A stretch of 64,000 nt of DNA, taken from contig LSRY02000014.1 of the NCBI GenBank assembly GCA_001643675.2, positions 806,001-870,000 on the forward strand, in the 5' to 3' direction. Origin of the DNA: Monocercomonoides exilis PA203 (taxonomy: Eukaryota; Protista; Preaxostyla). Position numbers and translations under genes: made by a program. Positions 10,466-51,934 of this stretch are shown piece by piece; positions within the stretch are counted from its first letter, which is position 1; each line of letters opens with the position of its first letter. A model generated the notes under the pieces. The model saw only the letters and a list, made by a program, of their open reading frames with translations, did not search any database and had not been told where the DNA came from.

Positions 10466-11716
10466 CTAATCATATTCCTGAATATTTAGATTTGTAAGCC
10501 AAACTGCAATTTCGATATCAAACATTGCATCATCCAAGCCGTTTCTGTACCTGTTCACACATCGCTTCCACTGCCGCTTCATTCTTCCGAAAAACCATTC
10601 AACAGGAATCTGTATCTTTGCTAATCTTTCATAATATGGGTGATTATTTTTGAAATCATAACTTTTTTCGGAGTGTTGTTTTTTCAAAGGTTGTTTGTCA
10701 TTGAATTGAGATTTTATGTTTAAATGATAAATTCCATCAAAACCATTTCAAAATACAAATGTTTAAGATGAAATTTTGATGAAGATATTTTTAAATCGTA
10801 TTTTCACTTTTTAGTGTTCTGTTCTTAATATTTGAGTAAATTTTTCGAACCAAATATTTTGCATGAAAAAATATGATTTCAAAAATAATCACCCATATGT
10901 TATTTCTTCTATCGTTGAAGCATTTTTGATTAGTGCTATGACTTCTATTCCTTCAACAGCACCTTGATATCCTCTGTCTGTCATGACTTTCCAATGTTTA
11001 ATTCCAGCGTCCAATCCATATTTATCTCTTTCGTATTCTGATATTTGTGAATATTCTTTTCACAGCTGTAAGTCTCGTTTTAACAATGAGAAATCACGTA
11101 TGTGACCCTCTGCAACTTCTGAAGCAAACTATGCTTCAAAAGGATAACAAGCAGCAACTGCAACCTGGATTTTCAATCCATAAACTTTATGATTCCCTTC
11201 CCAGAGCAACTTCTGATTTTCAAAGCTGCTTGCCGGCTTGTCCGTATTTATTGACGTTGAATCAACTAGTAGTGCGATTGTTCCAAAAGAGTCGTCTGTA
11301 TCAGTATATTTAGGTCTTCTTTTCTCCATGTTCATTTTTCTCAATTCTTTTAACTGGAGTGGACGTATTTGAATTATTTCATCAGAAATTATGTGGTAAC
11401 TTCTGTTTAACCAAATCCCAATTCTCGTTTGTGTAGTTCCAGTGAAAAGCCATTCGAGTTCATAAATCATTTTGTCTGTAAGCGATAAAGATTCTTTTGG
11501 TCCTTTTCTCGGAGTGTGGCTAGTTTCGTTTTCAAGTTCGCAAATGATGCTGAATATTTGTTTTTCGGTCAATTTATATCTATCATTTGATTTTTGTTTG
11601 CGAAAGAAATCAAACAGCTGTCCTTCAGGCTCAGGATCTGATAACTCCATAATTTCAGTGTTCATATTTTTCTTATCAATTCTGTCTTTAATTGAACCAG
11701 CTTTTCGAAGAGCCAA
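10466..11716 (-). pseudogene. DDE transposase pseudogene of PIF/Harbinger-IS5 type (DDE_Tnp_4-like with N-terminal HTH)
   Basis: GPKESLSLTDKMIYELEWL HTH-like block; catalytic segments LVDST, YGLKIQ, GHIRD, MTDRGY and PVEWFFGRMKRQW. In-frame stops TAG 11129-11131 and TGA 11060-11062, plus a MITE insertion at 10638-10894. Confidence 0.85.
10638..10894. mobile_element. MITE family A copy 1 (257 bp), inserted in the transposase pseudogene
   Basis: Perfect 23-bp TIR GGGTGATTATTTTTGAAATCATA / TATGATTTCAAAAATAATCACCC, flanked by ATAT at 10634-10637 and 10895-10898. Confidence 0.92.
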
Positions 11717-12139
11717 ATCAAATATGTCGTTTGTTTCTTTTCTGTAAACATCAGATCATTAAAAATAATAAAAATAAAATTGAATAAAAACACTCATCCA
11801 TGTAGTGAAAGATGTCCACATTAACATTTTTACCACAAAAGTGGGAAGTCCATAATTATTATGCAACAAATAATGAAATAGTTTCTGACGTGACAAAACT
11901 TCAAGCAAAGTGTGAAACAAACTTTAAGGTGAAAAAACAAATGAATTTGAGTTCATCATAATATTTTTCCAATTTATTTGACACTATTTTATAAAAAAAT
12001 GATATTGAAGATGAAGAATCTGAGATAACAGAAAAGCTTAACCGAGAAAAGAAATTTCAAATTCCATCTCAAATTCCTTCGTGCAAAATCAAACCTAATA
12101 AAAATTTCAAAAGCCAAAATATTTTGATTCAAAATGTCT

Positions 12140-12497
12140 TTCAGCATCTTGTCAGGACGTTTAGAAAACTTGGTATGAAATGATTAATGATTCGCATTCA
12201 AAACACAAATTCCGAAGGGAGAAGATCTTTAATGTGGACAAATCATCATTGAGATAATCAGATGACATCTTCTTTCAATCAGCAACATCTTTAGAGTCTC
12301 CTTCGGCCCATTTCCTTGTTCCTTCGAGAGTGCGAAATGCCACACTTGTGGCTGTTGTAACCTCAGATGGTTTTTCTCTGCCTGCAATTGTTCTATGGCC
12401 GAGTTCCAATATTCAGGAAGAGTTAACTACATTCATTTCTCCTTCTCTTGATGTGTAGAGCAATGCTAACAGTTGGATAAACTTTATTTCATTTGAC
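12140..12497 (+). pseudogene. pogo/Tc1-mariner (DDE_1-like) transposase remnant
   Basis: One frame reads KTWYEMI..KIFNVDKSSL..NATLVAVVTSDGFSLPAIVLWP..SNANSWINFISF, matching the pogo IFNxDET, T..xDG..LP and N..GW motifs. Stops at 12162, 12255 and 12456. Confidence 0.65.
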
Positions 12498-13127
12498 AAA
12501 ACGCTTGTTGCTTTTCTTCCAGAAACATTGGATAGAAAGAAATAAAAGCATTTATTGGAAGAGAGAATTTTAAAATTTATTCTCTTACACAGCTTTTGTG
12601 CAAACTCAGAAATTCTGGGAAAACAAACGGAATCTGATTCAAGTGGGATTTCTTTTGTTCCTTGAACAAAAGTCATTCACAATCTTTTGAAAAAGTCGAA
12701 TTTTCTGTTCTGAAATATGTTTTGAATTCATCTTTCGAATTCATTCACACCTCAACTTCTTCATAATGAAAGGCTTTAGCAGATGTCTTTCACCAAGCCA
12801 TTCACTCTGTATTTGCCCCATAAGTTGTGAAGAATGCCTTCGAAGCTAGCAGATATTTTAGGAAATCATCCAGACAAATTATACGAAAATGACCAAAACA
12901 TTCTTCTAATCCTTTTCCATCTCACTCAAAACAATTTGATTTTTTCAGCAAACTTTTCACAAATGAAGCTTCCTTTGAAATGTGGGAAGAAGAGATTTTC
13001 ATTCAAACAAAAGCTACAAGTGCTGAAGAGGAAGAAAAAACGGAAATCTTTGAGGAAACACATTTATCATAGTTAAAGAAGAAAACAGTTTTTCGAAGAA
13101 TATAACAAGATATTGTGCAAATTTTCC

Positions 13128-13231
13128 AAAAAAAAAAAAAAAAAGAAAAAAAAAAAAACGAGGATATTATGTTTTTATGTTTTTCTTTTTCCTGTGCCTT
13201 GATCCAAAGAAGTTTTTTTTTTTTTTTTTTT

Positions 13232-13271
<40 letters not shown>
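13128..13271. repeat. Poly(A) tract followed by a long poly(T) tract
   Basis: ~31-nt A tract at 13128-13158 and ~59-nt T tract at 13213-13271. Confidence 0.9.
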
Positions 13272-13272
<1 letters not shown>

Positions 13273-13661
13273 GCTAATAGATTTCGCATTTATATGGATA
13301 AAAAACCTTCAACATTTTTGTTCCAACAAAAAATAGAGTGAATAATAGTTAAAAATTATGATGCATCAAATGTTTCATGGATTTATTCCACAATTTATTT
13401 ATTCTGATTTGAATTTTGCTTTGTTCAGCTTTGTTTATTTGGAGGAAACAAGATTTTTTTATTAAAGCCCATTTAAAAAAAAAAAAAAATACATTCAAAG
13501 TTTCAAAACTTTAAATACTCATTGAAGACCATGTAATTTTATTTTTCAATGCATTTCGTTAAAAACCAATTGATTTCATGTGAAGTGTACTTTGTGAAAT
13601 GAAAAAATTAAAAAAATTAATTCTGACTTTTTATTAAATTTAATATTCATTCGAAGAATGC

Positions 13662-14554
13662 TCACATTTTGTCGATTAAAGCTCTCTTTAAATCTGAAGA
13701 AATGGTCGATGCAGTCGCTTCGTTGAGCTTGAATATTCTTTCAATAACAGAAAGTTCAGTTGACGTTGTATCCAATCCACAGAATGCGCACCAATCATTA
13801 GCTACCAGACCTGCACCAATAACATCAGATCCTCGATTAACAGTTCCTGCAACAAGAGGCATTTCCAAAAGATTGGATAATTCCTCAAGTTCTTTTATTG
13901 GTGCCATTGGATGTATAAGTCCTCCTTGATTAGTGAATCTGCAGCAACTTCCGACAAGTGGACTTCCTGCAATTGTTTGCCTGAATACTTCTACTCCAAG
14001 AACATCCTTCACAATTTCTTCAGTGTTCTATTTTCAAAAATTTTGTCATTAATAACACAAAACTATAACATTAACAAACCGAATCTGCTTCTGGATGAAG
14101 TAATGCAACATGATCATTACATGTTATAACATTTCCAAGAGCTGACAATTTTTCCTCTAATCTTTGAATAACGACACTATCAGGAAGTGATGCTCTAATG
14201 TGAGTCAGTTCTTGATCTGTTGTTGTATGAGGTACAAGCAACCCCTTTGTATTTCCTTATATTAAAAATATACGTTGAAAAAAATAACTTTTCGAAAAAA
14301 CAAATGAACCAAACCAACACAAAGAGTACCAGCAATTTTCGTTCCAGCAAAAGTTGCTTGTACAACTGGAATATGATCTGACAATTCTTCTTCAAAATAA
14401 GAATAAAATTGAGGGTTTCCTAAAGGAGTAATACAGTAGGCACTTGTCAACACCGCAAAAACACCCACTTCACTGCTATTTTCATATTGCACACCTGGAA
14501 AAGAAATAAATATATCAACGAACAATAAAAGATTATCGACAAACGAATTGCCAT
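13662..14554 (-). CDS. EIF6: Eukaryotic translation initiation factor 6 (60S anti-association factor), 4 exons
   Basis: Spliced [74 protein letters not shown] and [10 protein letters not shown]. First intron 14494-14544. Confidence 0.97.
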
Positions 14555-14748
14555 TTTTTAATGAACAAAAAAATAATTTCTGTGATCGTAGCCCATTGAT
14601 AATATTAAAAATTTCTATCAATAATAATTTATTTGTTTGCTGATAAAAACACTTTCAAACAGAATCAAACCATTTCTTTATAAATTCAAAAACAGAAAAT
14701 TTTGTGTGAAGATTTTTTGATCTAACCCACATTATATACAATCATCTG
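14555..14748. promoter_or_regulatory. Probable bidirectional promoter between eIF6 and NOP56
   Basis: Divergent start codons are only 194 bp apart. Confidence 0.55.
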
Positions 14749-16744
14749 ATGCCAGTTTGTTCTCTTTATTACTGTTATTTTGACAGTAAATATTGATTTT
14801 AACAAAACTTATATGCTTTATAATAGTCTCAACTTTATTTGCTTTTTGAAAGTGCACCAGGATATGCATTGTTTGAATGCTTAGCCCCTGGTGGCGTTAT
14901 ATCAGACCCAAAAGACTATACAGAGATGGCACGCTTTGCTACACACATGAAATTATCTGCATTTCTTCCTTTTGATCATCCAGAACACGCACTGGCTGGA
15001 ATTAAAAACATTTCGCTTGGTTTGATTGTCGATCATTAAAAAAAATATTCAAAGTTCTTTTTAGGGGTACTCGGACCTGATCTTCTGGAATTTTTAAGAA
15101 CAAATTTACCATCTGTTTCAGAAAAGAAATCATCTTCTGTTCAATTGGCTGTTCAAGAACCAAAGATTGGTGCTGCAATAAGCGAAACATTCAACATTAC
15201 CTGCATTACAGATTCTAGAACCGAGGATCTCTTTAGAGGAATAAGACTTCACCTCCATAAATTCCTTGATTTGGATCCTGAGGATATTGATAGAAGTCAG
15301 CTTTCTTTGGCCCATGCGTACTCAAGATCGGAGGTGAAATTCGATGTTAATAGAACTGATAACATGGTTAAACAAGCTGTATTCTTGTTTGATCAATTGG
15401 AAAAGGACATTAACATGGTGGCTATGAGGGTTAAAGAATGGTACGGAGGACATTTCCCAGAGTTGACAAAAATTGTAATTGACAACATTCAGTATTGCAA
15501 GATGATCCTTCTGTTTAAAAATAAATCTGAAATTAATGATGGAATGCAGGCTGAATTGGAAGAAATTACAGGTGATAGCGGAGTCGCTATGGAAGTCATT
15601 GAAGCTGCAAAGACCTCGATGGGTTTTGATCTGTCAGACATTGATCTTGAGAATATTCTTGTGTTTGCCACACGTGTCGTTAAGCTTTCTGAGTATCGTG
15701 AGACTCTTCGAGGATATCTTACATCCAAAATGACAAGTGTTGCACCCAATCTTACTGCTCTTCTTGGAGTTTTAGTGGCTGCACGTCTGGTCAGCCATGC
15801 AGGATCATTAACTGCTTTGTCAAAGGATGCAGCTTCAACTATCCAAATTTTAGGTGCAGAAAAAGCACTTTTCAGGTGTGAAAATATATGTTAATGATTG
15901 CGAATTTCTAATTATATTTCTTTTGAATTACGATTCAAATGTCATATAAAAAATATTTTTTTTACTTTTCCCCAATTATTTACATTTCTGATATTCATGT
16001 TTCGACGCTCAGAGCACTGAAATCACGTTCAAACACACCAAAGTACGGGCTGTTGTTTAATTCTTCATTTGTGCAGAAGGCGATGGCCAAGAACCGTGGC
16101 CGCATTTCTCGCGTGCTTGCCAACAAATGCGCATTGGCCAGTCGTATTGACTCATTTGCTGACACACCCACTTCCGTCTATGGAGAAGCTATGAAAGAGC
16201 AAATTGAAGATCGCCTTGAATTCTTGAAGAACGGAGGAAAGACATTGAAGAACAGCGATGTTATGAGGACTGCTGCAGAAAAAGTTTGATATTTCTTAGC
16301 CTTACTATTGAATCATTCATTGCATTATTTTTGAAATTATTCGTTTTTTATTTAAAAATTATTATTATTGAAATTTCACAATAATATAATTCAAAAAATT
16401 TATAACGTTCTTTTCGGCTTTCATTACATTTCATACAGGCAAAGGAGTACATCGCACGTATGGCAAGTTTAGAGAGCGAAAAGAAGGAAGAAGAAGAAGA
16501 CGAGGACGACATCAAAGTTGAAAAGAAAAAGAGAAAGAAGGAAGACGTTCAGGAAAGCGAAGAAGAGGAAGAAAAGAAAGAAAAGAAAGACAAAAAGAAG
16601 AAGGACAAAAAAGAAAAGAAAGAAAAGAAGGAGAAGGATAAGAAGGAAAAGAAAGAAAAGCACAAAGACAAGAAAGACAAGAAAGAGAAAAAAGAGAAAA
16701 AGAGATCCAAAAAAAGCGAAAGCTCAGACGAGAAAAGTGACTAA
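14749..16744 (+). CDS. NOP56: Nucleolar protein 56 (box C/D snoRNP), multi-exon, KKE/D tail
   Basis: LFESAPGY; [23 protein letters not shown] (NOP56-type, not NOP58 SLSRY); [11 protein letters not shown]; APNLTALLG; [14 protein letters not shown]; TPKYG; [21 protein letters not shown]; lysine-rich tail. ATG inferred at 14749 (MP/SQLYLLF). Confidence 0.95.
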
Positions 16745-17156
16745 ATAGAATATTTTATGCTCATCTTTTGAGCACTCCATTTCCACATTTTCTTCTTTTT
16801 CTTTATGCCATCGTATTTTCTCTCTCTTATTCAATTCACAAAATGCAGTCTTTATAATAATATTTGCAACTAAATGAAGCGAGTATACTTGTAAAACACC
16901 CAGGAAAAAAAAAAAAAAATAAATAAATAAAATAAAACAACTTCAAAACATTATCACAAACTACAAATGAACGAAAGAATAGAAAAAAAATTAGTGACAA
17001 ATAAAACATTTCTCAAATAGATTTAAAAAATACTGTTTCAAATTTATCAAAATAAATATGCAAAAATGAAAAGAAAAAACCTTAACAAATGAAATAAAAT
17101 ATTTCTCAAATAGCAATCAATCAAACATTACATTGTATGCATTTACAAAACACAAA

Positions 17157-20100
17157 TTAATTAACTTTGATCTCTGCGTATTCTTCAATCTCCTCCAATT
17201 CATGGCACACGTTATCAAGCTCATTCCTCTCAAACAGATTCATCTTTTCCATCTCGCCAAATGGAGAGCACCAGCGAAAGACACTAACTGTATCTCCTTT
17301 CCATATTAATGTGACATCTGACACAGGAACAGCACTCCTCACAGTAACAGCAGATGGAATAATTGCTCTTGTCTTTTCCTTATCTTTGTCTTTTTTGCGC
17401 GAAAACAGGCTGAAGTTGAACCGAGATGTAGGAGCATTGGCAGGTTGCACTGGAACAATTGAAGCAGCTGCAGCTGCATTCTTGTCTTTGTCTTTGTCAG
17501 CCTTCCGAACCAAGCGAATAGAGACGATTCGTTTGTGTGTGCCTTGGAAAAGCACTCCACGACTGATGCTTGGAGGATCAATGCCCAAATTCACTCTCCA
17601 CACGCTCAGCTCTCCCTCGCCTTCACCAAACACAGCAACCGTCCTGCCTTTGTTGTCAAAGCGGATAGCAGAAATTGCAGAAGAGCTGACTCCATCCACA
17701 GAACACACTCGCGATCCGCCAAATACATCGACAACGTTCAATGAATGCTTAGCCATCAGAGTCGAAGAAGACGATGAAGAAGACATTGAAGAAGAGGTGT
17801 TGGAAGAAGAAGGAGTTGCATAAGCCAAGAAAAGGGAACCAGAACACCCTTGCCCAACATTAGAAAACGGCTGTATGTAGAACGTGGCCATTGGATACAG
17901 CCAGCACAAGCACCTCACAAACGAGTACACCCACTTCTGTACAAACACACAGAAACCAGGTGTGAATTGCTGCTGCTTGGCAATCTTTGCTTTCGCCTTT
18001 GACGAACCAGACTTCTTCCCATAGCCAATCTCCGCAGCCACACAGTCTCCTACTCGCATCACAAATTCCACAATCAAATTCAGACGGCAGCTCATTGCGA
18101 CAGACGTGTGACCGCCCAGAACCCATTCGCTCACAATAGCCATCCCAACAGCCACTCTTCGCTCATCGACACTCAAACGACTGAACATGGAAAGCCCGCT
18201 TTGTGTGGTGAAGATCCGAAGAACATGCGCCGCGAGTGTAGTTGGCGTCAAAGCCATCTGAGAAGAAAGATACAACTGCGAAACAGAAGAGCTCGAAGTA
18301 GAAGACGAAGAAGGTGCAGATGATTCATTCATCTTTTCCATAACCTTGTTCAGTAGTTCCATCATCTGCTCGCTTTCTTCCTTTCCGAATGTGAAAAGCG
18401 CCTTCAATGCAGTGTCATTCAAGGGCGAATGAGACACACCCACAATTCGATTTATTGAGCGAGATTGTTTGTTACTGTTTTGCAATGATGAATGATAAGC
18501 TGAGTCTCTTTGTGTTGATAGAACCGAAGCTGGGACATCTTTGTCAGGAGCGATGACTTCATTCATCTTTCTTCTCTTTTTCAGCGAATGTGTCACTATC
18601 CTCAGCGTCAGCACGGACAGTTTCCGTTTCTTCCACTCAATCTGATCCGAGCACAGATCGTCCAACAGATGGAGCTCTTCTTTTTCATCGGAGTCACTGA
18701 TGATCGGTGTATTCTTTAAGTAGCTGTCAGACCAGTCTAAACATGCGCGCACAATTTCTTTGTCCTTCTCCAACGATGACACATCAAGCATTGTTCCATT
18801 CACACGATGCTCTTCACCAGATTCACCAGCTCCATCGTCTTCCACATCCGCTCCGCTTTCATTCCGTTCGATCGAATCCAAAAATAGAACACGGAGCAGC
18901 ATTTGCACTTCGCCTGCACTCAAATAAGGTCTGTAAATTAGAATAAGCCAGCACAACAGCCAGATTCCTCCAGTCATCGACTCCACACCACCAGAAGACA
19001 AAACATCAAGTACGCTTCCAATCACACCTTCCACTCCAACTTGCATCGATCGCGAACCTCCACGCGATATTCCGATATCTCCGGCAAGCATTGTCGCAAC
19101 AGATATGACTGAGAACAGAGAGGAAGCAGTGATTGCATTGGAAGAAGATGATAAAGATGAGCAAGACGAAAGAGGAAGCAGAGAAGAAGGCTGCAATGAC
19201 TGAATGATAATCTCTCCATCGCTATTCTTCGTATCTTCTGTAACTGCTCCTTTTTTCGCAGAAGCTGTTTGTAATTGCTGTCTAAGCACAGACTTCATTC
19301 CAACAGTAAATTTGCTCTTCAAATCTTGTGGGTGGCATATTGCATCCTTTATACCACCAGTCCACGATGAATCAGGCAGGGTTATTGCTGTTGAAGAAGA
19401 TGAATTAGCATTAGCTGCAGGCGATTCGTAATCAAACACGCTAAGCTCTGCAGCTGAAAGGCAGACGTTTATCAGCCGATGGAGATCCTTTTTCGGTATC
19501 CTCCGGATGAGCGAGTATGTCAGTCCTCGGGCAGCCTCACTCACACACAAACTGCCACTCCACGACAAAGAGATGGGAACACCCAAAGAACAGCGCTTGA
19601 GTGAGTAATGAGAGAATGTAGATTCATGAGAAGATGACAGCCCAGAAGATTGAGGACTAGTAGATGCCATGGCAGATGGTAAAGCATCAGCATTCCGAGG
19701 TTGATTGCTAAGAAGACGAGAAAAGGTCCCATTTGCTAGCGAAGCAACGATCGAAATTTCTCTCATCACAAATTCGTTCCATTCGTTGATAGCAGTCTTT
19801 GTTTTCTTCGCTCCACTGCTCGATGCTGTCACTGCCTCTTTTAATTGCTCTGTTCCAGCGATGTTGTTTGTGAGACCTGCAGCGCTGTCAGGAAGTACAT
19901 CTGGCTCCACCTCCACTTCCTTTCCACCACTTCTCCACTCGTTGGGATTAGGATGAATAAACAGTGCATTTAGAAGAGAGATAACAGTCAGTGATGTTGA
20001 CGTTGTAGCTTCAGGTGAGAGGCAAAAAGCAGATACTCCGTAAGAAGATGCAGGAAGTGCGAGTGTTATTGACTGAGGAGTCATGTTTCCCATTACAAGA

Positions 20101-40831: not shown

Positions 40832-41068
40832 AGTTTTTCATGTGTTGTATTAACTTCCTTTCAAAGCAAAAAAAAATTACACTTTGATTCTTTTTCCATT
40901 TCACCTTCCTCCATTTCACATAAAAACAAAAGCAAATTCAATTTTTTGTGAGCTTTTATTTTACTCAACTGGTTTTAAAGGAACAAAAAATTTAAGATTG
41001 TAATACAACAAAATGTGAAATGAATTAAAGAAATGGTGATAAAAAAATTACTAATTATAACAATTGTT

Positions 41069-44000
41069 TCAAGCTTTTGATTTTGTAATTGGCTTTGGAG
41101 GCAGCTTTGTTGCACGAGAAGGAACTTGAGAATGAAGTGAATTGCGTTGAGAAGACCACGATGAAATAGAAGAGACAGAAGAGCGAGCAGAAGAAGGACG
41201 AGAAGCTGGACGAGAAGGTGCAGATGACTGAGAAGCAGTTCTTGGAGAGGAAGAAGAGGGAGCAGGAGATATTGAACGTCTTGGAGCACTTAATTTATTC
41301 TGTGACAAATCAGTGGGAGGTTTTATGCGGCTTTTTCCAATGAGGGAAACTCGACCTTTTCGCCTCATCGCATCAATTCTCGCTTTGTCTTCTTCAGCTT
41401 TCTTTCTTTTCTCTTCCTCTTCCCGTTCTTTTTCGTCGCCACCCCACAAATCAGGCGGGGGCGCTACAAAGAAAGGATCAGAGGACACCTGCTCTGAGCT
41501 GAAGGGCTTTGGCATTACTGTTTGAGAAGTCAAAGACGATGAGGTGGTTGGCAAAGATGAAGCAAAAGGAGATGGGGTAAGATTACTCTGATTCACAAAA
41601 GAGTTTGGCAAAATCGAACTGAAAGACAAAGCAGGAGAAAGAGAAGGAGTAGAGAGAAGCGAACTTTGTGTTGTGAGGTGAGAAAAAAGAGGGTCAGAAA
41701 GAAGCGAAGGAAATGGTGACTGAATCTGCTGTGGTGGAAGTGAGGTGAATGATGAAGTGGGTTTTGATGAATTGGGCAATGAATTGAATGATGAAGGGAA
41801 TGATGTGAAAGGTGAGGTGCCAGAGATCAAAGATGATGTTGTGAATGGAAGAGAGGGTGATGAAGAGTTTTGCTCTGTTGCTGGTGACAAACTTGGTATA
41901 TAACTTGAGTTTGAAGGTGGTTGCGCCACTTGCTCTTTTTGATAATTTGCATTTCCTGCGACTTCAGAAGGAATATCAGAAAATTGCTTGGCTTTTTCTT
42001 TTTCTTTATCCCTGCGCAGATCAATGTATCTTCTTTTCGCGTTGTCTGCATCCTGATTCGATGCATTGACACTAAATGATGGTGATTGAGCCTGTGCTGC
42101 AATTGTTGGTTGTGCTTGTTGCTGTTGGATGTCCTTCTCAACATCTTTGTAATCATACGGTGATGATTTGGTGTCTATTGGAGTTGTTTGCTTTCCATTT
42201 CTGGATTGCTGCGTTAGTATCTCCATCTTCAATTTCTGTAGTTCTTCTGTTTTTTCATTGATGATCTTGTCTTTTATCTCAATTAATGATGAATATTTAT
42301 CTACAATAGTTTTCAATTGAATTTCACTCTGCTTTTTGGTTTCTTCTGCTTTCTGTTCAGCTGCTTTTGTCTTTGCCTTCATTTCGTCTTCCATCGCATC
42401 AGCTTTCTCTTTAATTAGCTTCAGTTGCTGTAACATCGTGCTTTTTCTCTCTTTCGCACCAAGCTCTGCCTCCAACGCTGCATTCTTCTCTTCCATTTCT
42501 CGAAGCTGTTTCTCAGCTTGTCTTGTTCTTTCTCTCAAATTTATCTCTTCTTTTTTCTCTTCTGCTCTTCTTCTGTCTCTCTCAGCATACTCTTTCACTT
42601 CTGCTTTGAGCGACTGTATTTCCGCCTCATAGGCAGTTTTCAGCATCTCTCTGCTTTCTTCCGCCCTCTTCCTCTCTGACTCCATCTGAGACTTTATTCC
42701 TTCCATTGCTCCTTCAGCACCAACACATCGGCACGACAGCGCAGATGCTTGTGTTTTAGCTTCGCGAAGCAGTTGTTCTGCTTCTTCTGCTCGCGCTTTT
42801 AAGCTTTGCGTCTCGCCACGATGCATCAAAAGCTCGCTTTGCATCATTTGCAGTTGCTTTTCTGTGTTTATTCTTCTCTTTCTCTCTTCTTCAACCATTT
42901 TTTGCATCGTTTCACGAAACGCTAATTCTCCCATTGTGTCTTTTTGTTGAAAGCCTTGTAAGCTGCTGAATGGAGAAATGCCTGGAACGTTTGAATATTC
43001 GCTCTGCATTTGGTTTGCTTGAGGCGATACAGCTTTTGGTGCTAGCTGAATTTCCAGCAATTCTGCTGATTTTGAGTCGATTTCTCTTCTCAGTCGGTCC
43101 AGTTCTGTTCTATATCTATCTTCGCGTTCTTTCCAAGCGCTAGATTTGCGTTTCAGCTCTTCTTCAAGACGCTCGTTTTCTTCTTTTTCTTGATTCAACT
43201 CGTCTTCCAACAGCTTTCTGCTTTCTTTCAGTTGTTTGATGGTGTCGTTGAGTGGAAATTCGGATTCAGAATTCAACGGCTGAGGAGGTGCGAATGAAGA
43301 AGCATCTTGAGCAGAAGACAACGCTCTTTGTGAAGAAGACGACTGAAAAGAAGGCGCAGCAGTGAAGGAGTCCTCCTTTTGCTTTGAAGATCTTCCTGCC
43401 CCCAGAACAATAGGTGCACCTTTCTTTCTTCCTTCTTTTGCCCTCTCGTTTTTCATTTCACTTAATTTTTCGACTTCAAAATTCATTTTGTTGCATTTAT
43501 CTTCAAGTTCATTGATGATACTTGACAGTCGAGCAACTTCTCTCTCTCTTTCTCTTTCTTTCTCTGCCACTTCTTTCTCAGCTTCCGTTGCAACGCGGAG
43601 CATCTCCCGCTTGCTTTGTTCTTCTCTCTCTTTCTCCCTCTCTCTCCACTCGTTTTCTCTTTCTCTTTCTCTTTCTCTCCATTCGTCTTTCTCTTTTTCC
43701 CATTCATCTTTCATTTCTCTTTCTCTTTCCTCCCATTGGCGTTTCTCTTCAAAGTGCTTTTCATTCATCATCACTGCTTTGCTTTCAGATGATGCTGCTT
43801 CAACCTCCATCTTATGCACTTTCTCCTTCAAAGTCTTCAATTCTTCTCTTTCTTTCATCATTTGCGCTTCAAATTCTTCTTCTTTCTTTCTCATTTCTCT
43901 GTTATGTGTCAATTTTTGCTCTTCCATTTTGACTTTTATTTGCTCTTTTTCATTCTCCTGCTCTTGTTCTCTTATTTTCTCTTTCTCTTTCTCTCGTTTC

Positions 44001-47000
44001 ATTAATTCTTGTATGTCTCCTTCCAGTTCATCAACCTCTTTCTGTTTTTCCTTCAGCTTCTTTTCCAGTGCTTCGTTTTCTTCACGTAGAACTCTCAACA
44101 AAACACCAGCTCTTTCTTTTCTGTCATCGCCAAGGAAGTTAACCCTCTTCTCATCTGCCCTTTTTAACGATCCTTCGTCTCCTTCGTCTGACCCAAGCTC
44201 TGATTCACTTAGACGTGTTTGAAGCATCCGTTCTTTGCTTCTTAAACTCTGGTTTTCTTCTGCAAGTTCATTAAGTTTGATTGTCAATTGCTTCTTTGTT
44301 TTGATCGCTTCTCTTTCCGCATTTTCCTTTTCTTCTCTCCTTTTTTCTTCCTCTTCCTCAATCTGTCTTCTCTTTTCTTTTTCACTTTTGATTTGTTGTT
44401 TAAGTTGCTTCACTTCTTCCTCCAGTTCCTCTTCTCTCTCTTTCCATTCTTTCTCCTCCTTTTCTCTCTTCTGCGAATCTTTCCTCTTTTCTGCTTCTCT
44501 TTGCTCTTCCAGTTCTTCTCTTCTCCTTCTTTCTTCCTCTGCCTCATTCACAACGCTTATGACTCTTTTCTCTAATTCAGCGATTCTCTCATCTTTTGTT
44601 GCTTCCTCCACACTTACTGGGCCAGTCGCTTCCTTTGTTTTTTCTTCTTCCTTCTGATTTTCTTTCTTTCTTAATTCTTTCAGTTTCTTTTCCAGCTCAT
44701 TATTTTTTTCTTCAAGCTCTATTTTCTCCTGTTCTATCTCCTCTTTGTCTTCTTGAAGCTCTTTCATTTCTTTTTTGCTTTTGTTCAGTTCTGCTTTTAT
44801 TTTTCTCATTTCATCTTTCAAGTTTTCAACATCTTTCAATGATGCTTGGTATTGTTCATCGAAATCATCTTTCTCTTCTTTTCTTTTCTTTTCTTCATTT
44901 TCTTCAATTTGCTTTTTGCCTGTTTTCTTTCCTTTTTTGTTCCTTAACTCTTTCTCTTCATCATCGTTTTCTTCTTCCGATTCTTCAGCATTCTCAAATG
45001 AATCTAATTCTTTCTTTCTCTTTTCTTTCTGAGAGCTTGGCGACCCTAAAACGGCTTTTTCTGAGAGTAGTTTTTCTATTTGCTGAGATAAAAGTTTCAC
45101 GTTTTCCATATTCGCTCTTTCTCTTTCTCTCTCCTTTTCCTTTTCCCTTTCCAGTTCTTCTTGCAGATTTCTTGATTTCTCTCTTTCTCTCCTAATCTCT
45201 TCATCTTTTTCTGTGATTCTTTCTCTTTCTCCTTGAAGTTTGCGTTCTTTTTCATCTGCTTTTTCCTTTTCTTTTCTAATATCTTTTTCCATTTCTTCTT
45301 CTTGTTCCTTCATTCTTGCCTTCAGTCTGTCGATTTCTTGTGCTTTTCTTTCCTCCACATCTCTTATTTTCTCAGACAATAGTTTAATTTCTTTCTCGTT
45401 CTCTTTCACTTCTGCATCTTCTTTTTCGAGCTCAACCTTCAAAAGTTGGATCAAACGATTAGCTTCTGCTTTTTCTCTTTCGAGTGTCTTCATTGCCGTC
45501 TGAAGTTCTTTCAATTGCTGTTCAACTTTCTTCTTCTCATCTTCTTTTTCTTCTTCCATTTTCTGCCTCTGCTGCATAATGTTCTCCATTTCTTTCACTC
45601 CTCTTCCCATTTCTTCCATCTGCTTTCTGAGCGTGTTTCCTCTTTCTTTCTCTTCATTGAGTAGCACTTGAAGATTCTCTCTCTCCTTTTTCTCTTCCTC
45701 TCTCATTTTCAGTTCTCTGGCGCTTTCTTCCTCTCTTTTCTGCCTTTCTGCATCTCTTTCTTTCTTTGCCTCTTCTCTTTCGCCTTTCCATTCAGCTTCT
45801 CTTTCATTCCATCTTGCTTTCGCCATTTCTCCATCTCTCGCCTTCTCCTCTTCCAATCTTTTGATCTTGTCCTCATATTGTTCTTTCTTTATTTTCCATT
45901 TTCCTTCTCTTTCAATCCAATCAAGCCTCTCATTGATTGTTTGCTCGTCTTTCTCTTTGCGCTTGTTCCGTTCTTCTTCCAGCATCTCTTTCAGTTTATT
46001 TATTTCCATTTGAAGTTGTCCAACTTCTTTTTGCTTTTGTTTTTCTTTCTCTCTATCAATTGCTTCTTGCTCTTCTTTTTCCTTTGCTTTTTTGATTTCT
46101 TCTTCTTCTCTCTTTCTTTGAATCTCCAGTTTCAATGCTTCCAACTGCTCCTGTCTTGCTTTTTCTTTCAATTCTTCTTGTTCTTTTTCTTCCGCCCTTC
46201 TCTTCTCTTCTCTTTCGTTCATCTCTTTCTCCCATTTTGCTTCTCTTTCTATTCTCCTCCTTTCTCGTTCCTCTTCTCTCTCTTCTTGCTCCAAATACTT
46301 CTTTTTTTCTTCTTCTTTCTCTTTTGTAGCTCGCTCCTCTTCGAGTTTTCTTGCTCTTTCTCTTTCCTCTTCTTCTCGTTTTCTTTGTCTTTCCCTTTCT
46401 TCTCTCTCAATCTCCTTCTCCTTCGACAAATGCTCCATCAGCGCATACAATGGCGCAGTCACAGAAGCCAATGCAAAGCCATCAAGAGGCGAAGCTGCTT
46501 TGTTTTGAGATGAAAATATCGGCGATTGGGAGGGCAGTGCTGGTGTGGTTGAAGTGAACATCGTGTTTTCTGGTGACAAAACAGTGGGAGAAGGGAAAGA
46601 CGTGATAGGACTTGGAGAAGGGGATGAATAAGACGAAGAATGAGGTGACTCTTTGTTTGATGAAGATGAACTAGAAGAAGCTGATTGTGCTTCAATAGGA
46701 AATTGTTTACTTCGTCTAAGTTTCGCATCACTTTGCACAACATTTTTAGAAGGTGATGAGCTTCTTTTGTTTGACTGCTCTTTTCCTCTTTCATTGCTTG
46801 TTGATCTTCTTTCAGCAGAAAGATTCTTCCGCAACGGAGCAGTCTGCATTTTTCTCCTTTCCTCGCTTTCTCTTTCATTCGCACCAGTCGGCTTGATCTT
46901 TTTCTTTGCTCTTAAAGGCGAAGTTTGTCTGCCTATTGAACCGCTCCTTCCTTTCCACAAAGGCTGCCTCAGCGGCTGAGTTCTGGCTGTTACGGTTTTT

Positions 47001-49519
47001 GCCTTTTTCTTCTTCTTCTTCGGAGTCGAATCTATTTGCACAGGAGATGAAGCAATAAAAGGATTGTCTGTTTCTTGTTGTGATGACTTTACATTTGAAC
47101 GAGTAAAACGAACTGGTGCTGTTTTCATTGCAATTGCAGCAGCTCTTTCTTCTGTCTCTCTTCTCAGTCGATCAGATGGGCTCTCTTCAATCTCCATCTT
47201 CTTTTCGTTTCTGATTCCTTCCTCTTTTATTCCATATGCATTCGGCTGAGACATTTGCTGCTGTCCTGTTCTTTTGTCTTTCTCAAGCCCCATTTCATCT
47301 ACTTCCATCACAACAGGAGTCCAAAACAAGCTGTCTCTTGGAGAAAATGCATTTTTGGTTCTGTCCTGATTTTCGCCATATTTTGAGCGAGTTGCTCTTT
47401 CGTTTGTGCTGTCGCTGCTTTCATCATCTTCTTCACTTCTTCGCATCGTTTTTCGTTTTTCATTCTTTTCTTTGTGTTTCCTTTTTTCTTGTTTTCTTTT
47501 CTTTGCTTTTTCGCTTGTTGATGAATCGCTTTCACTTGTTGTTTCTTCTTTTTCTTTAGCATCACTTTCGGTCTCGCTTTCTTTGCTTTCCTCTTCCAAA
47601 TATTTGTCCACTTCCTTCATCAGCATTGCCAATTCATTTGTTGTGTTTGTTCCCATCACCCCTTTTATCCAATCTGTTTCTTTGTGTTTTTCGTTTTCGT
47701 CTTTAATCCCTCGTTTTGTTGTGCGCATCTGTCTTTTTGATTTGCTTTCTTTGTTTTTGTGTTTTCTTGACTTTTTGTCTTTTTTATTCTTTTTTGAGTA
47801 TCTATCACTTTTTCTTGAAGAGGACGATGATGATGAAGAAGATGAGGAGAAGGAAGATGAGGAAGATGACGAGTCATTTGAACTTGAATCATCATCGTCT
47901 GAAATTGAATCATAACCATGCCTTTCTTTTGTTTTATCTTTTCGATTGTCTTTTTTCTTTTCTTCCTTTTTGTGTTTGTCAACTGTTTTATGAGTTTTTT
48001 CTTTGGGAGAAGAATCTTCGATATCATTTTTTGTTTTGGTCATGGAATAGCTTAATTGCTCTGATGAAGTTAAATCTTGATCCTCTTCTTTTGTATCTTC
48101 AATATTTCTTTCTTTGCCTCTGTTCATTAAGCTTTCTTCTTTAATCTCTGCTCTATCTTCTTTTTCATCATAAACGTCGTCGTCGTCTTGTTGAGGACTC
48201 TGTTTTATTTCTTCATGATTTTCATTTGCCTCATTCGCTGCTGTTTCTGTGGGCGTCACTTCTTCATCCACCTCAACAGGAGGTTCATCAGAATCATCTG
48301 AATCTTCCAGAAAAGCGGCAGCTGTCATTATTGGTTTATTCATCGAACCTGGAAAGGCAATAGAAGTTGGACTAGACAAATTTTCATTGTTGTCCTGTTG
48401 CTTCTTAGGAGCTTTATTGTCTGAAGTTGTTGATGATGAAGTCGTTGTTGCATCTTCTTTCTGAGGAACTTCTGAAGCTGAATCTCTTGCATATGCAAGA
48501 GATTCTATTGATGATGCGCTGTCGGAGTGTGTATCTGATGATGTGAGTGTGTTTTCGTTGTTTTTAGTTGATGTTTTTGATTCTTTTTCTTTTATAGATT
48601 CATCTGAAATTTCTTTTTGCTCTTTGCTTTCTTCATTTGTTCCTCCTAAAGAATCAGTTTTGTGATGTCTTTTTCTTTTCAGTGCAGATCCAAAAGGATT
48701 TTCATCTTCCAAATCTTCTTCACTGCTTGACCCAAAGTCATTCGAGCCATCAGTCAAATTTTCATCATCATCATTATCAAAATGATCTTCCTTCGCCTTT
48801 TCTGGAAGTTTTTGGATATCATCATGATCATTTGTTTCGGTTGATTCTTTTGATTCCAAAAGTCCATTGTCCGTTTCATTTCCTTCTTTATTCGTTCCAT
48901 AATTTCCTGTTGAATTCTCAGAAAATTGTGATTCTTTCACTTCTTTGTTTTCATTTGATTCATTTTTTAATGATGTTTCGTTTTTGTCAGTTTCTTCTTC
49001 GTCATCGTACTTCACCGTAAAATATTTTGCAATTGCATCGTCAATACTATCCGTTGATCGTTCGGTCATCCCTTCTTGAAGACCAGAACTATGAATTGTT
49101 GAGTGATCATCTTTTTCATCTTTTTGATCAGAAACATCGTCAACAGAACTAAGAAGATGACCTTCGTGTGTCCTATCACTGTCTCCCATATTTGTTTTAT
49201 TTGCATCATTTTGTTTGTGTTGATTTAATGATGAAGATGAAGTGTTTTCCAAATCAATTGAAATATCATCAATATTTGAGTAATCAGGAAGCTCTGACAT
49301 TTGTGGAGATTGAAATTGATGTATTGCATCAATTCTTGGACTTTTAGATGATTGTCGAAATGATTCTTCAATTGAAGAACCACCAAAACGATAAGTTGGA
49401 TAATATGATTGTTGGCCTGTTGCGTGCCTATATTCATCATCATCAATTGATGTGTCTTCGTAATAATCTTCTTCATCGTATGTAGATGGATTTCCTCCAT
49501 ATTTCCATGAAGTAGACAT
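41069..49519 (-). CDS. Single-exon 2,816-aa protein: disordered acidic N-terminus, long E/K/R coiled-coil/SAH core, Ser/Pro tail
   Basis: Uninterrupted 8.45-kb ORF with about 1,400 aa of E/K/R-dominated helical sequence; no recognisable catalytic domain. Confidence 0.85.
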   Translation of the reverse strand: MSTSWKYGGNPSTYDEEDYYEDTSIDDDEYRHATGQQSYYPTYRFGGSSIEESFRQSSKSPRIDAIHQFQSPQMSELPDYSNIDDISIDLENTSSSSLNQHKQNDANKTNMGDSDRTHEGHLLSSVDDVSDQKDEKDDHSTIHSSGLQEGMTERSTDSIDDAIAKYFTVKYDDEEETDKNETSLKNESNENKEVKESQFSENSTGNYGTNKEGNETDNGLLESKESTETNDHDDIQKLPEKAKEDHFDNDDDENLTDGSNDFGSSSEEDLEDENPFGSALKRKRHHKTDSLGGTNEESKEQKEISDESIKEKESKTSTKNNENTLTSSDTHSDSASSIESLAYARDSASEVPQKEDATTTSSSTTSDNKAPKKQQDNNENLSSPTSIAFPGSMNKPIMTAAAFLEDSDDSDEPPVEVDEEVTPTETAANEANENHEEIKQSPQQDDDDVYDEKEDRAEIKEESLMNRGKERNIEDTKEEDQDLTSSEQLSYSMTKTKNDIEDSSPKEKTHKTVDKHKKEEKKKDNRKDKTKERHGYDSISDDDDSSSNDSSSSSSSFSSSSSSSSSSSRKSDRYSKKNKKDKKSRKHKNKESKSKRQMRTTKRGIKDENEKHKETDWIKGVMGTNTTNELAMLMKEVDKYLEEESKESETESDAKEKEETTSESDSSTSEKAKKRKQEKRKHKEKNEKRKTMRRSEEDDESSDSTNERATRSKYGENQDRTKNAFSPRDSLFWTPVVMEVDEMGLEKDKRTGQQQMSQPNAYGIKEEGIRNEKKMEIEESPSDRLRRETEERAAAIAMKTAPVRFTRSNVKSSQQETDNPFIASSPVQIDSTPKKKKKKAKTVTARTQPLRQPLWKGRSGSIGRQTSPLRAKKKIKPTGANERESEERRKMQTAPLRKNLSAERRSTSNERGKEQSNKRSSSPSKNVVQSDAKLRRSKQFPIEAQSASSSSSSSNKESPHSSSYSSPSPSPITSFPSPTVLSPENTMFTSTTPALPSQSPIFSSQNKAASPLDGFALASVTAPLYALMEHLSKEKEIEREERERQRKREEEERERARKLEEERATKEKEEEKKKYLEQEEREEERERRRIEREAKWEKEMNEREEKRRAEEKEQEELKEKARQEQLEALKLEIQRKREEEEIKKAKEKEEQEAIDREKEKQKQKEVGQLQMEINKLKEMLEEERNKRKEKDEQTINERLDWIEREGKWKIKKEQYEDKIKRLEEEKARDGEMAKARWNEREAEWKGEREEAKKERDAERQKREEESARELKMREEEKKERENLQVLLNEEKERGNTLRKQMEEMGRGVKEMENIMQQRQKMEEEKEDEKKKVEQQLKELQTAMKTLEREKAEANRLIQLLKVELEKEDAEVKENEKEIKLLSEKIRDVEERKAQEIDRLKARMKEQEEEMEKDIRKEKEKADEKERKLQGERERITEKDEEIRREREKSRNLQEELEREKEKERERERANMENVKLLSQQIEKLLSEKAVLGSPSSQKEKRKKELDSFENAEESEEENDDEEKELRNKKGKKTGKKQIEENEEKKRKEEKDDFDEQYQASLKDVENLKDEMRKIKAELNKSKKEMKELQEDKEEIEQEKIELEEKNNELEKKLKELRKKENQKEEEKTKEATGPVSVEEATKDERIAELEKRVISVVNEAEEERRRREELEEQREAEKRKDSQKREKEEKEWKEREEELEEEVKQLKQQIKSEKEKRRQIEEEEEKRREEKENAEREAIKTKKQLTIKLNELAEENQSLRSKERMLQTRLSESELGSDEGDEGSLKRADEKRVNFLGDDRKERAGVLLRVLREENEALEKKLKEKQKEVDELEGDIQELMKREKEKEKIREQEQENEKEQIKVKMEEQKLTHNREMRKKEEEFEAQMMKEREELKTLKEKVHKMEVEAASSESKAVMMNEKHFEEKRQWEEREREMKDEWEKEKDEWRERERERENEWREREKEREEQSKREMLRVATEAEKEVAEKEREREREVARLSSIINELEDKCNKMNFEVEKLSEMKNERAKEGRKKGAPIVLGAGRSSKQKEDSFTAAPSFQSSSSQRALSSAQDASSFAPPQPLNSESEFPLNDTIKQLKESRKLLEDELNQEKEENERLEEELKRKSSAWKEREDRYRTELDRLRREIDSKSAELLEIQLAPKAVSPQANQMQSEYSNVPGISPFSSLQGFQQKDTMGELAFRETMQKMVEEERKRRINTEKQLQMMQSELLMHRGETQSLKARAEEAEQLLREAKTQASALSCRCVGAEGAMEGIKSQMESERKRAEESREMLKTAYEAEIQSLKAEVKEYAERDRRRAEEKKEEINLRERTRQAEKQLREMEEKNAALEAELGAKERKSTMLQQLKLIKEKADAMEDEMKAKTKAAEQKAEETKKQSEIQLKTIVDKYSSLIEIKDKIINEKTEELQKLKMEILTQQSRNGKQTTPIDTKSSPYDYKDVEKDIQQQQAQPTIAAQAQSPSFSVNASNQDADNAKRRYIDLRRDKEKEKAKQFSDIPSEVAGNANYQKEQVAQPPSNSSYIPSLSPATEQNSSSPSLPFTTSSLISGTSPFTSFPSSFNSLPNSSKPTSSFTSLPPQQIQSPFPSLLSDPLFSHLTTQSSLLSTPSLSPALSFSSILPNSFVNQSNLTPSPFASSLPTTSSSLTSQTVMPKPFSSEQVSSDPFFVAPPPDLWGGDEKEREEEEKRKKAEEDKARIDAMRRKGRVSLIGKSRIKPPTDLSQNKLSAPRRSISPAPSSSSPRTASQSSAPSRPASRPSSARSSVSSISSWSSQRNSLHSQVPSRATKLPPKPITKSKA

Positions 49520-49756
49520 AAAATATAGAAAATGAAATGTTTATTTAAAACAAAGTAAATATAATATGGGAGCAAATTTTTTTGTTTTCGAAAATTATTG
49601 AAATTTCAGATGAGTTCTTTAATTGTAACTTTTGAGATTAATATTTCATGAGTTTCTTGTTATTTTTATTACAATTTTTGCAACATGCATTATTATTTTT
49701 TTATTTTTGTATCAAAAACTGGATTTTTTCGATAAGAAAACAGGCATAAGCTATAT

Positions 49757-50014
49757 GGGTAATTATTTTTGAAATCATAACTTTTTTCGGGGTGTTGTTT
49801 TTTTCAAAGGTTGTTTATCATTGGGAAAACCTTTTGTTATAAAATGCAACAACAATCACAATTGTTTAAAAAAACAAATGTTTTTGCTTTTAATATGATG
49901 GAGATGTCATCAATAAGACTTTTCACTTTCGTGTGTGAAATTGTTTATATTAAAGTGAAATTTTCGAACCGAAATTTATGAAAGAAAAAAACATGATTTC
50001 AAAAATATTCACCC
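49757..50014. mobile_element. MITE family A copy 2 (258 bp)
   Basis: TIRs GGGTAATTATTTTTGAAATCAT / ATGATTTCAAAAATATTCACCC, with ATAT duplicated at 49753-49756 and 50015-50018; colinear with copy 1. Confidence 0.9.
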
Positions 50015-50625
50015 ATATGGAAAATGTTGCTTTTTTATCAGTGCATTTTCTGAACAAAAATTTCTTTTTGAAAATAAAATTGTATCATGTTAATTATTTT
50101 GTAGTTTTTTCTCATTAGTAAAACAGCATTTTTTCGAAAAATTGTCCATTATCTTAAAAAAAAAGTTTTTATTCAAAACAAAATTTACTCATTAAGCAAT
50201 CCAAACATTTGACTTCTTTTTTTATTGTTTATTATTTATGTTTGTTATTAGAATTCAAATTATAGCACTTTGGAAGAGTAATTTTTCTCTATGAAATTTG
50301 TTCTGCACAGTTCTTTAAAAGACTTTTCTCTCTTTTTTTAATTTTCTTTTTAACTTTGCATGGTAATATCAGAATAAAAAAGATTCGATTCCCATTAAAA
50401 ATTAGAACAAATCATTGATTTTTTCATCAATAAAAAAAATACTATCCTGTTTTGCTAAAAATGTCAAAAAAAATTGTGAATTGTTCCAAAAAATAATTGT
50501 GAACGGAAAATTTTAATGATAATCTAAGGCGGTTATATTTTCAATCACATATATTCACAATCAGAAATCTTCCCAAATTGTTGTTCAAAACTCACTTTCA
50601 TGATGTCCGATTTAGACAGAGAATG

Positions 50626-50986
50626 GATTGTGCAAAAAATTCCGGACAAGATCGATTTCACAACAACTGCAAGATTAAATAATTCTGTTGATTTTTCTCT
50701 TCATAGATCTTATCCACACTAACTCATTTGACATGCTTGACCACCATTTTCGCGTTGACTGAATACTGAAAAAAAAAAAAAATAAATAATTTTCGGAAAA
50801 AAAGGATTTTTTGTTTCAAAGAGATTATCATTATTAATTTTTTATGAGCACAAATGAAGTCGTTTTGAAAGTCTCGTGTTTCAAATGAGTTTGTATTAAT
50901 GAGATATATATTGAGAAAAATCAACAGAATTATTTTTTCTTGCAGTTGTTGTGAAATCAATCTTGTCCGGAATTTTTTGCACAATC
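50626..50986. mobile_element. Foldback-like element with long imperfect inverted repeats
   Basis: GATTGTGCAAAAAATTCCGGACAAGATCGATTTCACAACAACTGCAAGA... from 50626 is mirrored at 50986. The first ~75 bp are near-identical, and similarity continues to ~105 bp (50731 vs 50881). Confidence 0.75.
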
Positions 50987-51039
50987 AATATTTATTCTCC
51001 TGTCGGAAATATCAAAAAGTCAATAAAACAAAAAGACTT

Positions 51040-51297
51040 GGGTGATTATTTTTGAAATCATATTTTTTCATACAAAAATTTCGGTGCAAAAATATTTTTT
51101 GAATATCAATAAAAAAATTGTTTAAAAGTGAATAGGCTTATTGAATACGTTTTAATCTTTGATTCGGATAAACCATTTGTTTTTAAAAACAATTATCAAA
51201 CTTATTCTTTTTTTAATATAAATTTTTCTTTCAAAAACAAACAATCTTTGAAAAATTAACACCCCGAAAAAAGATATGATTTCAAAAATTATCGCCC
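51040..51297. mobile_element. MITE family A copy 3 (258 bp), opposite orientation
   Basis: TIRs GGGTGATTATTTTTGAAATCATA / TATGATTTCAAAAATTATCGCCC, with non-palindromic ACTT duplicated at 51036-51039 and 51298-51301. Confidence 0.9.
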
Positions 51298-51934
51298 ACT
51301 TGAAAAAATGGATGCAATTTACCAAATGACACGCATTCATCAATTCGTTATCAGCTTTTGATCTATTTCGTTGAGGAAATTCAAAATCATAAATTTTAAA
51401 CAATTCTTTGAGATGAAACATAAATGATAAAAAATGAAAAATTATAAATGCACATAGCAAATTAGTGATTTCAAATACAATCACAAATCTTATTAGTGAA
51501 ATATTAATTAGAGAATCATTTTTATTCGAAGTTCAGAGTTTTTATGTAATTTATTCGAATTTGTTTGTAAAAATTTTCGATTTTGAACAATTTTTAGTGT
51601 ATACAAATAAATAATCAATAAAAAAAAAATCACTGAGTTTAAAATTGTACTGGATTCTTTGAATTTGCCAAAAACTTACAATAATACTCAGTTCCAGTAA
51701 ATATAAAATTGAAGCAAAATTAAAAAAATCCATTGGAAAATTAAAACGCAAATAAAACATGGATCTCAATCTCTCGTGGGAAAAGTTATTGATTTTTGAG
51801 TTCTTAACAGAGAGGAAAGAAAACAATTAAACCATTGAAAACGAACAGAACCGCAAAATACAAAATATTTAAAAAAAACAAATAAACATGAATAAAAATT
51901 TTTTTGTTATTGATAGAATAATAAACAGCGGTTT

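Follow-up and report, generated by a model that had tools for sequence, protein, structure and literature searches.

The stretch of DNA analysed here, which we call the window, comprises 64,000 nucleotides from the gut-dwelling oxymonad Monocercomonoides exilis PA203 (assembly GCA_001643675.2, contig LSRY02000014.1, positions 806,001 to 870,000) and contains three copies of a miniature inverted-repeat transposable element (MITE). All three are intergenic and flanked by host genes. Copy 1 has a serpin gene on one side and a Nop gene on the other, and copies 2 and 3 lie in an AT-rich spacer upstream of an open reading frame (ORF) of 2816 amino acids, with copy 2 situated 238 bp upstream of the ATG of this ORF (41069-49519, - strand). 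We think it likely that these repeats are a non-autonomous MITE of the Sola2 group, ~256 bp in length, with 22-bp terminal inverted repeats (TIRs) of the form GGG..CCC and an ANNT target, and that giant elements of the same genome are the most likely source of its transposase.

The coordinates of the three copies in the initial annotation were confirmed exactly (Table 1). The shared TIRs, which it had put at ~23 bp, were found to be 22 bp, and the six termini differ from GGGTGATTATTTTTGAAATCAT by 0–2 mismatches; this sequence had 0 matches in 100 dinucleotide shuffles used as a control. The target site duplications (TSDs) are intact at all three copies as had been claimed (ATAT/ATAT, ATAT/ATAT and ACTT/ACTT), and the colinear blocks which had been listed are visible in a three-way alignment, in which copy 3 is inverted relative to copies 1 and 2.

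We searched the whole genome (82,301,135 bases in 101 contigs, where the window is C8:806001-870000). With at most 2 mismatches the TIR was matched 1255 + 1253 times (~2,500), while a reversed control pattern gave 0 matches in the whole genome at the same threshold. As ~380 of the TIR matches belong to longer elements, this corresponds to roughly 1,000 MITE copies; a first-look BLAST gave 1173 candidate copies. The consensus of 36 copies recovered with their flanks is 256 bp long and non-coding, and conservation is 0.93–0.95 at TIR positions vs 0.77–0.87 in the interior. Several subfamilies, as proposed in the initial annotation, are present among the genome copies.

An intact 4-bp TSD was found at 28 of the 36 copies, and all 28 read ANNT: 18 are ATAT (64%), ACTT and AAAT occur twice each, and AGAT, AGTT, ACAT, ATTT, ATGT and AACT once each. 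In the unfiltered flanks position -4 is A in 34/36 copies and position -1 is T in 36/36. Because every TSD is ANNT, ends of GGG..CCC with a 4-bp TSD and ends of TGGG..CCCA with a 2-bp TSD predict one and the same empty site and are inseparable from sequence. We counted the TSD as 4 bp, after the published Sola2 convention. The earlier argument that the non-palindromic ACTT fixes the TSD at 4 bp therefore holds by the usual convention, but the TSD becomes 2 bp if the T and A are counted with the ends (ACTT, AGTT, AACT).

Precise insertion was seen at locus L011, where a MITE copy (L011:1501-1756, TSD ATAT) interrupts an ORF. When the MITE is deleted together with one ATAT, the reading frame becomes continuous again, and the predicted 45-nt empty site was found with 0–3 mismatches in ten paralogues of the interrupted gene, which proves that the insertion was precise. 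The repeats are thus non-coding and shorter than ~800 bp, have TIRs, a TSD and precise insertion, and combine a high copy number with a homogeneous length, as MITEs do. The interrupted gene (L011:18-3127, C13:33146-36255) is itself a young Sola2 gene encoding a USP domain followed by a DDD core, with paralogues that are 92–96% identical and have open frames of 1003–1008 amino acids. In this gene copy the frame is disrupted by one TAA and by the focal MITE, so that the MITE has inserted into a gene for a transposase of the same superfamily as itself.

Long elements with the same type of ends were found by searching for the TIR without adjoining MITE sequence and then for ANNT followed by a variant TIR, with the ends paired per contig. 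Four elements of 4.3–5.7 kb with matched TSDs have the TIRs GGGTGATTTTTTTTGAAATCAT / ..GATATCAT. They contain no ORF longer than 284 amino acids and no Pfam match and are non-autonomous; they are ~75% alike and part of a large family. The TIR of the 4–7 kb non-coding elements agrees with that of the MITE at 20–21 of 22 bases and their TSD spectrum is alike; the pairing of ends on one contig also yields TSD-matched elements of 4.5–6.9 kb. Six TSD-matched end pairs of 17–25 kb (here called giants) enclose matches to the transposase and to the USP domain (PF00443), with the USP and catalytic matches in one open frame of 1050–1230 amino acids (1077 on C1 and 1226 on C47). Between the giants and the MITE the TIRs disagree at one or two of 22 positions, and some giants have the A9 of the MITE. 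At 100 long-element ends the TSDs were ATAT (n = 54), AAAT/ATTT (n = 21), ACAT/ATGT (n = 11), AATT (n = 7), AGAT/ATCT (n = 5) and ACTT/AAGT (n = 2), a spectrum resembling that of the MITE.

Table 1 Coordinates of the MITE copies and of related and neighbouring repeats. Unprefixed positions are those of the window.
Feature	Location	Strand	Size	TSD	Remarks
TSD, left, MITE copy 1	10634..10637	no strand		ATAT	
MITE copy 1	10638..10894	+	257 bp		subfamily 1; 90% to 256-bp consensus
MITE copy 1 TIRs	10638-10659, 10873-10894				both 22/22
TSD, right, MITE copy 1	10895..10898	no strand		ATAT	
Possible decayed family fragment	16324..16360	-	37 bp		84% to consensus 216-251; weak match, E 4.6e-4
TSD, left, MITE copy 2	49753..49756	no strand		ATAT	
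MITE copy 2	49757..50014	+	258 bp		78% to consensus
MITE copy 2 TIRs	49757-49778, 49993-50014				1 mismatch each
TSD, right, MITE copy 2	50015..50018	no strand		ATAT	
TSD, left, MITE copy 3	51036..51039	no strand		ACTT	
MITE copy 3	51040..51297	-	258 bp		inverted; subfamily 2; 78% to consensus
MITE copy 3 TIRs	51040-51061, 51276-51297				0 and 2 mismatches, respectively
TSD, right, MITE copy 3	51298..51301	no strand		ACTT	
Mid-sized element	L034 501-4774			ACAT	
Mid-sized element	L035 501-6172			ACAT	
Mid-sized element	L037 501-5832			ACAT	
Mid-sized element	L040 501-5895			ATTT	
Giant element	C1:1192419-1212177		19.8 kb	ATTT	
Giant element	C1:1577371-1596864		19.5 kb	ATAT	
Giant element	C8:597790-620003		22.2 kb	ATAT	
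Giant element	C9:353451-375398		21.9 kb	ATAT	
Giant element	C12:173492-190451		17.0 kb	ATAT	
Giant element	C18:671235-695989		24.8 kb	AGAT	
Second MITE family copy	L038:9505-9745				
Second MITE family copy	L034:6086-6325				
Second MITE family copy	L044:~9725-9968				
Second MITE family copy	L037:7231-7469				

Two of the loci, L038 and L039, are 9.5-kb arms of two giants, and L040 (5.4 kb) aligns colinearly with the L038 arm. The mid-sized elements thus seem to have arisen from the giants by internal deletion. An origin of the MITE as a simple deletion derivative of the giants or of the 5-kb elements was rejected, as only the TIR matches. Within the giant C9:353451-375398 there is also an ORF of 366 amino acids (L039:1391-2491) with a weak USP match (PF00443, E 4.6e-4). 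It is encoded on the other strand than the catalytic match C9:362536-363375, at a distance of ~4 kb, and may be a second deubiquitinase-like gene of the giant. Elements of 0.46 and 1.2 kb on C42 ("family C") were not counted as independent insertions, because their flanks are identical and mutually inverted in three loci. These loci (L031–L033: 145126-146342, 498049-498507 and 558497-559697) have TIR-like ends with the G variant at position 9 or C at position 12 and look like copies of one larger inverted structure.

The ORF interrupted at L011 encodes a USP domain and then a region containing RRTDLCNLC, DFKEN, CDTGPHF and HGKSECD. The published elements Sola2_DFa-2 and Sola2_PPa-1 have NRTD.CP.C, DFKEN, SDGAKHF/CDNARHF and HGKSDVD/HGKSECD (PMC3627910, additional file 3). 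Searching 1.84 billion proteins by phmmer with the C-terminal region yielded 766 relatives. Among them is PPL_04538 (P0065) from Heterostelium album PN500, which matched this region with E 2.5e-19 and whose sequence reads as the published Sola2_PPa-1. BLASTP aligned the L011 protein with P0065 across 278 residues (2e-28), including the three acidic motifs DFKEN, CD..HF and HGKSECD, and the L011 protein is also homologous to the transposases in the giants (E ~1e-60, 39–41% identity). No Pfam family matched the C-terminal region of the transposase even at E up to 10, ten of its relatives carried none, and a protein atlas returned only unnamed or DUF7869 clusters for the region. The rule for Sola2 termini, which is attributed to Bao et al. 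in 2009, reportedly reads 5'-GRG ... CYC-3'. Sola has been described as lacking a Pfam model (PMC5751038). GAG...CTC ends of Sola2 elements are shown in a machine-read supplement (PMC3627910), and Sola2 TSDs have been published as AWWT, ATAT, AAAT and ATTT (Bao & Jurka, PMC3627910).

Here we found AT-rich 4-bp TSDs, GGG...CCC ends and, enclosed by elements with the same ends which are known from their coordinates, a DDD transposase homologous to that of Sola2. TSD, termini and transposase homology together lead to the Sola2 assignment. A resemblance to Sola2 had been noted from the window alone, and it is strengthened by a TSD spectrum like that of published Sola2 elements and by the occurrence of the same TIR on elements encoding a Sola2-homologous transposase.

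The MITE has no enzyme of its own and would supply only the ends. A Sola2 DDD transposase from an autonomous element would bind the 22-bp TIRs, excise the element at the GGG/CCC ends and integrate it with a 4-bp stagger at ANNT, mostly ATAT. The best candidates for the source of the enzyme are the 17–25 kb Sola2 elements, whose DDD transposase is fused with a USP deubiquitinase. The autonomous partner which had been predicted elsewhere in the genome does exist, and is probably represented by the giants, which have the same TIR and TSD and enclose the transposase; judging from these shared ends, it was probably their transposase, rather than that of another Sola2 lineage, that moved the MITE.

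Several observations count against this explanation. No giant end was seen with the exact 22/22 MITE TIR, the variants having A9 or A17 and not both, and the giants are known from coordinates and printed pattern matches of their ends. When the MITE interior was compared with 9.5 kb of giant arm (L038 and L039), no similarity could be detected, the TIR alone being shared. All sampled MITE copies are 8–23% off the consensus, so that the family looks old and without sign of current movement. Finally, the true partner could be another Sola2 subfamily, two copies of which have an exact MITE-type TIR at a distance of 4.19 kb from their transposase.

It is possible, though in our view unlikely, that this smaller lineage, with a TIR identical at 22/22 positions, moved the MITE and that the giants merely share a related TIR. 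Its exact TIRs, C7:1597226(+) and C8:106406(+), lie 4,185 and 4,191 bp from two Sola2 transposase copies (C7:1601411-1602463(-) and C8:110597-111655(-)), with an ORF of up to 1018 amino acids that is 47% identical to the L011 protein, and neither TIR has a MITE 3' end at 245–273 bp. However, there are two such cases only, and a MITE nested before the element amplified would give the same constant spacing. In addition, ~40–50% of exact TIRs have no perfect TCACCC partner, so a missing MITE 3' end is weak evidence. The TIRs at C7:1597226 and C8:106406 thus represent either a possible autonomous family whose ends are identical to those of the MITE or a nested MITE that was inherited.

The length of the MITE is narrowly distributed. 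In pattern searches of the genome with exact 16-bp ends, 139/139 elements were 245–275 bp long, with none at 276–306 bp and none at 214–244 bp. Among the 78 elements listed, lengths range from 252 to 269 bp, with a main mode of 254–258 bp (64/78, 82%) and minor groups at 260–263 bp (8 copies, mostly subfamily 2) and 268–269 bp (2 copies of one interior variant). The initial annotation had stated that length differs by at most 1 bp, which is true of the window (257, 258 and 258 bp) but not of the genome, and the transmission of the 260–263 and 268–269 bp variants makes "fixed length" too strong a term. Homogeneous length is in any case a textbook trait of MITEs.

We compared rates of insertion and deletion (indels) with those of substitution. 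Gap openings per mismatch were 0.052 in the focal MITE (all pairs; 0.069 in 13 copies found incidentally), compared with 0.091 in its long relatives and 0.10 in a second, unrelated MITE family of ~243 bp, so that indels are ~1.5–2 times rarer in the MITE than in the two comparator families. The standard deviation of pairwise net length was 1.8–2.0 bp in both MITE families vs 7.3 bp in 250-column chunks of the long relatives; a small net length spread is therefore not special to the focal family. In subfamily 1, 79% of substitution cells are common to at least 2 copies, which indicates that most variation arose in transposing lineages. Distinct indels per distinct substitution in this subfamily were 0.059 for singletons vs 0.015 for shared variants (Fisher P = 0.09), and for all copies 0.076 vs 0.032 (Fisher P = 0.06). 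Subfamily L044, whose central 100 bp is 48% identical to the consensus, remains in register (z = 4 vs shuffles) at 257 bp. Hypermutation resembling repeat-induced point mutation or deaminase activity, as a cause of many substitutions with few indels, was rejected because the spectrum, dominated by A<->T and GC>AT changes, is ordinary (transition/transversion ratio 0.64).

These data bear on the length or spacing constraint which had been proposed for the family, under which the transposase would mobilise only miniature substrates near ~256 bp, for example by bringing two bound ends together across a short stiff loop, and indels would be purged in transposing lineages. The narrow length, the register kept by L044, the low gap rate relative to both comparators, the small net length spread relative to the long relatives, the large part of the variation that passed through transposition, and the lower indel ratio among shared variants all speak for such a constraint, yet we regard it as doubtful. 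Longer sub-lineages have been transmitted, the private vs shared contrast is not significant, homogeneity is standard in MITE families derived from few source copies, and elements of 4–25 kb are moved by the same TIR, so that the enzyme has no general size limit. It should also be noted that the effect is possibly confounded, since residual homopolymer errors in a nanopore-based assembly would inflate singleton 1-bp indels and since the long relatives are mosaics whose indel rate may overstate the neutral rate. The homogeneity of length is therefore real and somewhat tighter than internal comparators predict, but the excess is modest and not significant in the cleanest test, and is suggestive rather than proof of a constraint. 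The narrow length is probably explained mainly by inheritance from related source copies, with mild selection against indels in transposing lineages as a possible addition.

A further idea, which we consider rather improbable, is that the Sola2 transposase accepts substrates between 0.26 and ~25 kb in size but, where these are miniature, imposes an optimum of length or helical phase. If so, indels would be depleted among variants that passed through transposition vs private post-insertion variants, and a physical constraint on the assembly of the transposase complex across a short DNA loop would be readable from sequence alone. With its many copies and internal structure, the family could allow selection on length during transposition to be tested cleanly.

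Membership of another superfamily, whether a Tc1/mariner- or pogo-like group with TGGG..CCCA ends and a 2-bp TSD or piggyBac, Kolobok or another group with a 4-bp TSD, is very improbable: ANNT at every site does make the 2-bp and 4-bp readings formally equivalent and TA is the central dinucleotide at 64% of sites, but CT, GT, CA, AA, TT, TG, AC and GA are also central in intact TSDs, there is no TTAA TSD, and a Sola2-type transposase is encoded by elements sharing these ends. If the TSD is read as 2 bp, 10/28 intact TSDs duplicate a dinucleotide other than TA, which excludes the obligate TA of Tc1/mariner and pogo, and piggyBac and Kolobok were rejected because TTAA is absent among the 28 MITE TSDs and the 100 long-element ends. 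PIF/Harbinger (3-bp TSD, TWA) was rejected because a 3-bp duplication fits none of the three window copies. The misfit with PIF/Harbinger and pogo which was pointed out at the outset thus stands.

Stowaway/Osmar and mPing/Ping-Pong of rice are the classical pairs of MITE and autonomous element which have only TIRs in common. They resemble the present family in high copy number, uniform length, a TIR and TSD that also occur on a considerably longer autonomous element, and cross-mobilisation inferred on the basis of the ends; however, they belong to another superfamily, the size ratio here is far larger (~1:80), and mobilisation here is deduced from sequence. The Sola2 elements of dictyostelids (DFa, PPa; Bao & Jurka 2013, PMC3627910) are alike in their AT-rich 4-bp TSDs (AWWT; ATAT, AAAT, ATTT), short TIRs of 12–22 bp with G.G at the start and C.C at the end, a DDD transposase with DFKEN, D..HF and HGKS.CD, and large autonomous elements of 10–15 kb with cargo. 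In contrast, we describe a 256-bp non-coding derivative with ~1,000 copies in an oxymonad host, and the candidate partners are larger (17–25 kb) with a USP deubiquitinase domain on the transposase. MITEs assigned to Sola2 have already been catalogued in insects (iMITEdb, PMC5199201), and these are likewise short, non-autonomous and assigned from TIR and TSD; there TIR/TSD rules alone were used, whereas here the same TIR is also found on elements of the same genome which encode a Sola2 transposase.

The genome paper describes a nanopore assembly of ~82.3 Mbp in 101 contigs with 46% repeats, 35% of the assembly being unclassified, and mentions neither MITE nor Sola elements (PMC8767320); in the published literature we found no paper naming Monocercomonoides together with Sola or MITE. 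The MITE itself is of an ordinary kind; what is unusual is the large size of its likely partner. What is added here is its quantitative description, the empty-site proof, the TIR/TSD link to the giants, an independent test of transposase homology and a first assessment of the claim on length. A repeat of ~1,000 copies, in an assembly of which 35% stood unclassified, is thereby given a named superfamily and a plausible source of enzyme. The same 22-bp end sequence is found on elements between 256 bp and ~25 kb in size, which differ up to 80- to 100-fold, and the MITE is therefore well suited as a small substrate in tests of the unusual deubiquitinase-fused Sola2 transposase.

Near-identical inverted pairs of the MITE were seen 10–28 kb apart (C2:1566131-1566387 / C2:1594722-1594978 and C12:713346-713600 / C12:723013-723268). 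Such pairs were probably not produced by recent transposition but belong to the two arms of larger inverted duplications or of long-TIR elements.

Other repeats were also present. The second MITE family is ~240–246 bp long, with ends GTC[T/A]AAATTTTTTTTGAAAAGTTCC...GGAACTTTTCAAAAAAA..GAC and 4-bp TSDs of ATAT, ACAT or ACCT, and its copy in L038 sits directly on the ATAT duplication of a giant Sola2 end. A third dispersed short repeat of ~270 bp, with copies 77–83% alike, was found at L041:3989-4259 and also in L014, L028, L047, L012, L019, L008 and L022. An ORF of 420 amino acids (L036:6727-7989) with a Tc1/mariner-type DDE_3 domain (PF13358, 1.2e-19) and HTH domains is probably a nested or adjacent mariner-like element.

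The genes of the window include those for a MINDY-type deubiquitinase (2313-5387), the serpin (8568-9320), Nop (15145-15894), Noc2 (39371-40087), a HEAT/PDS5-like protein (53512-57783) and Mtr4 (60021-61787). Two long ORFs on the - strand are uninterrupted, the one of 2816 amino acids next to copy 2 and another of 5543 amino acids (17157-33788).

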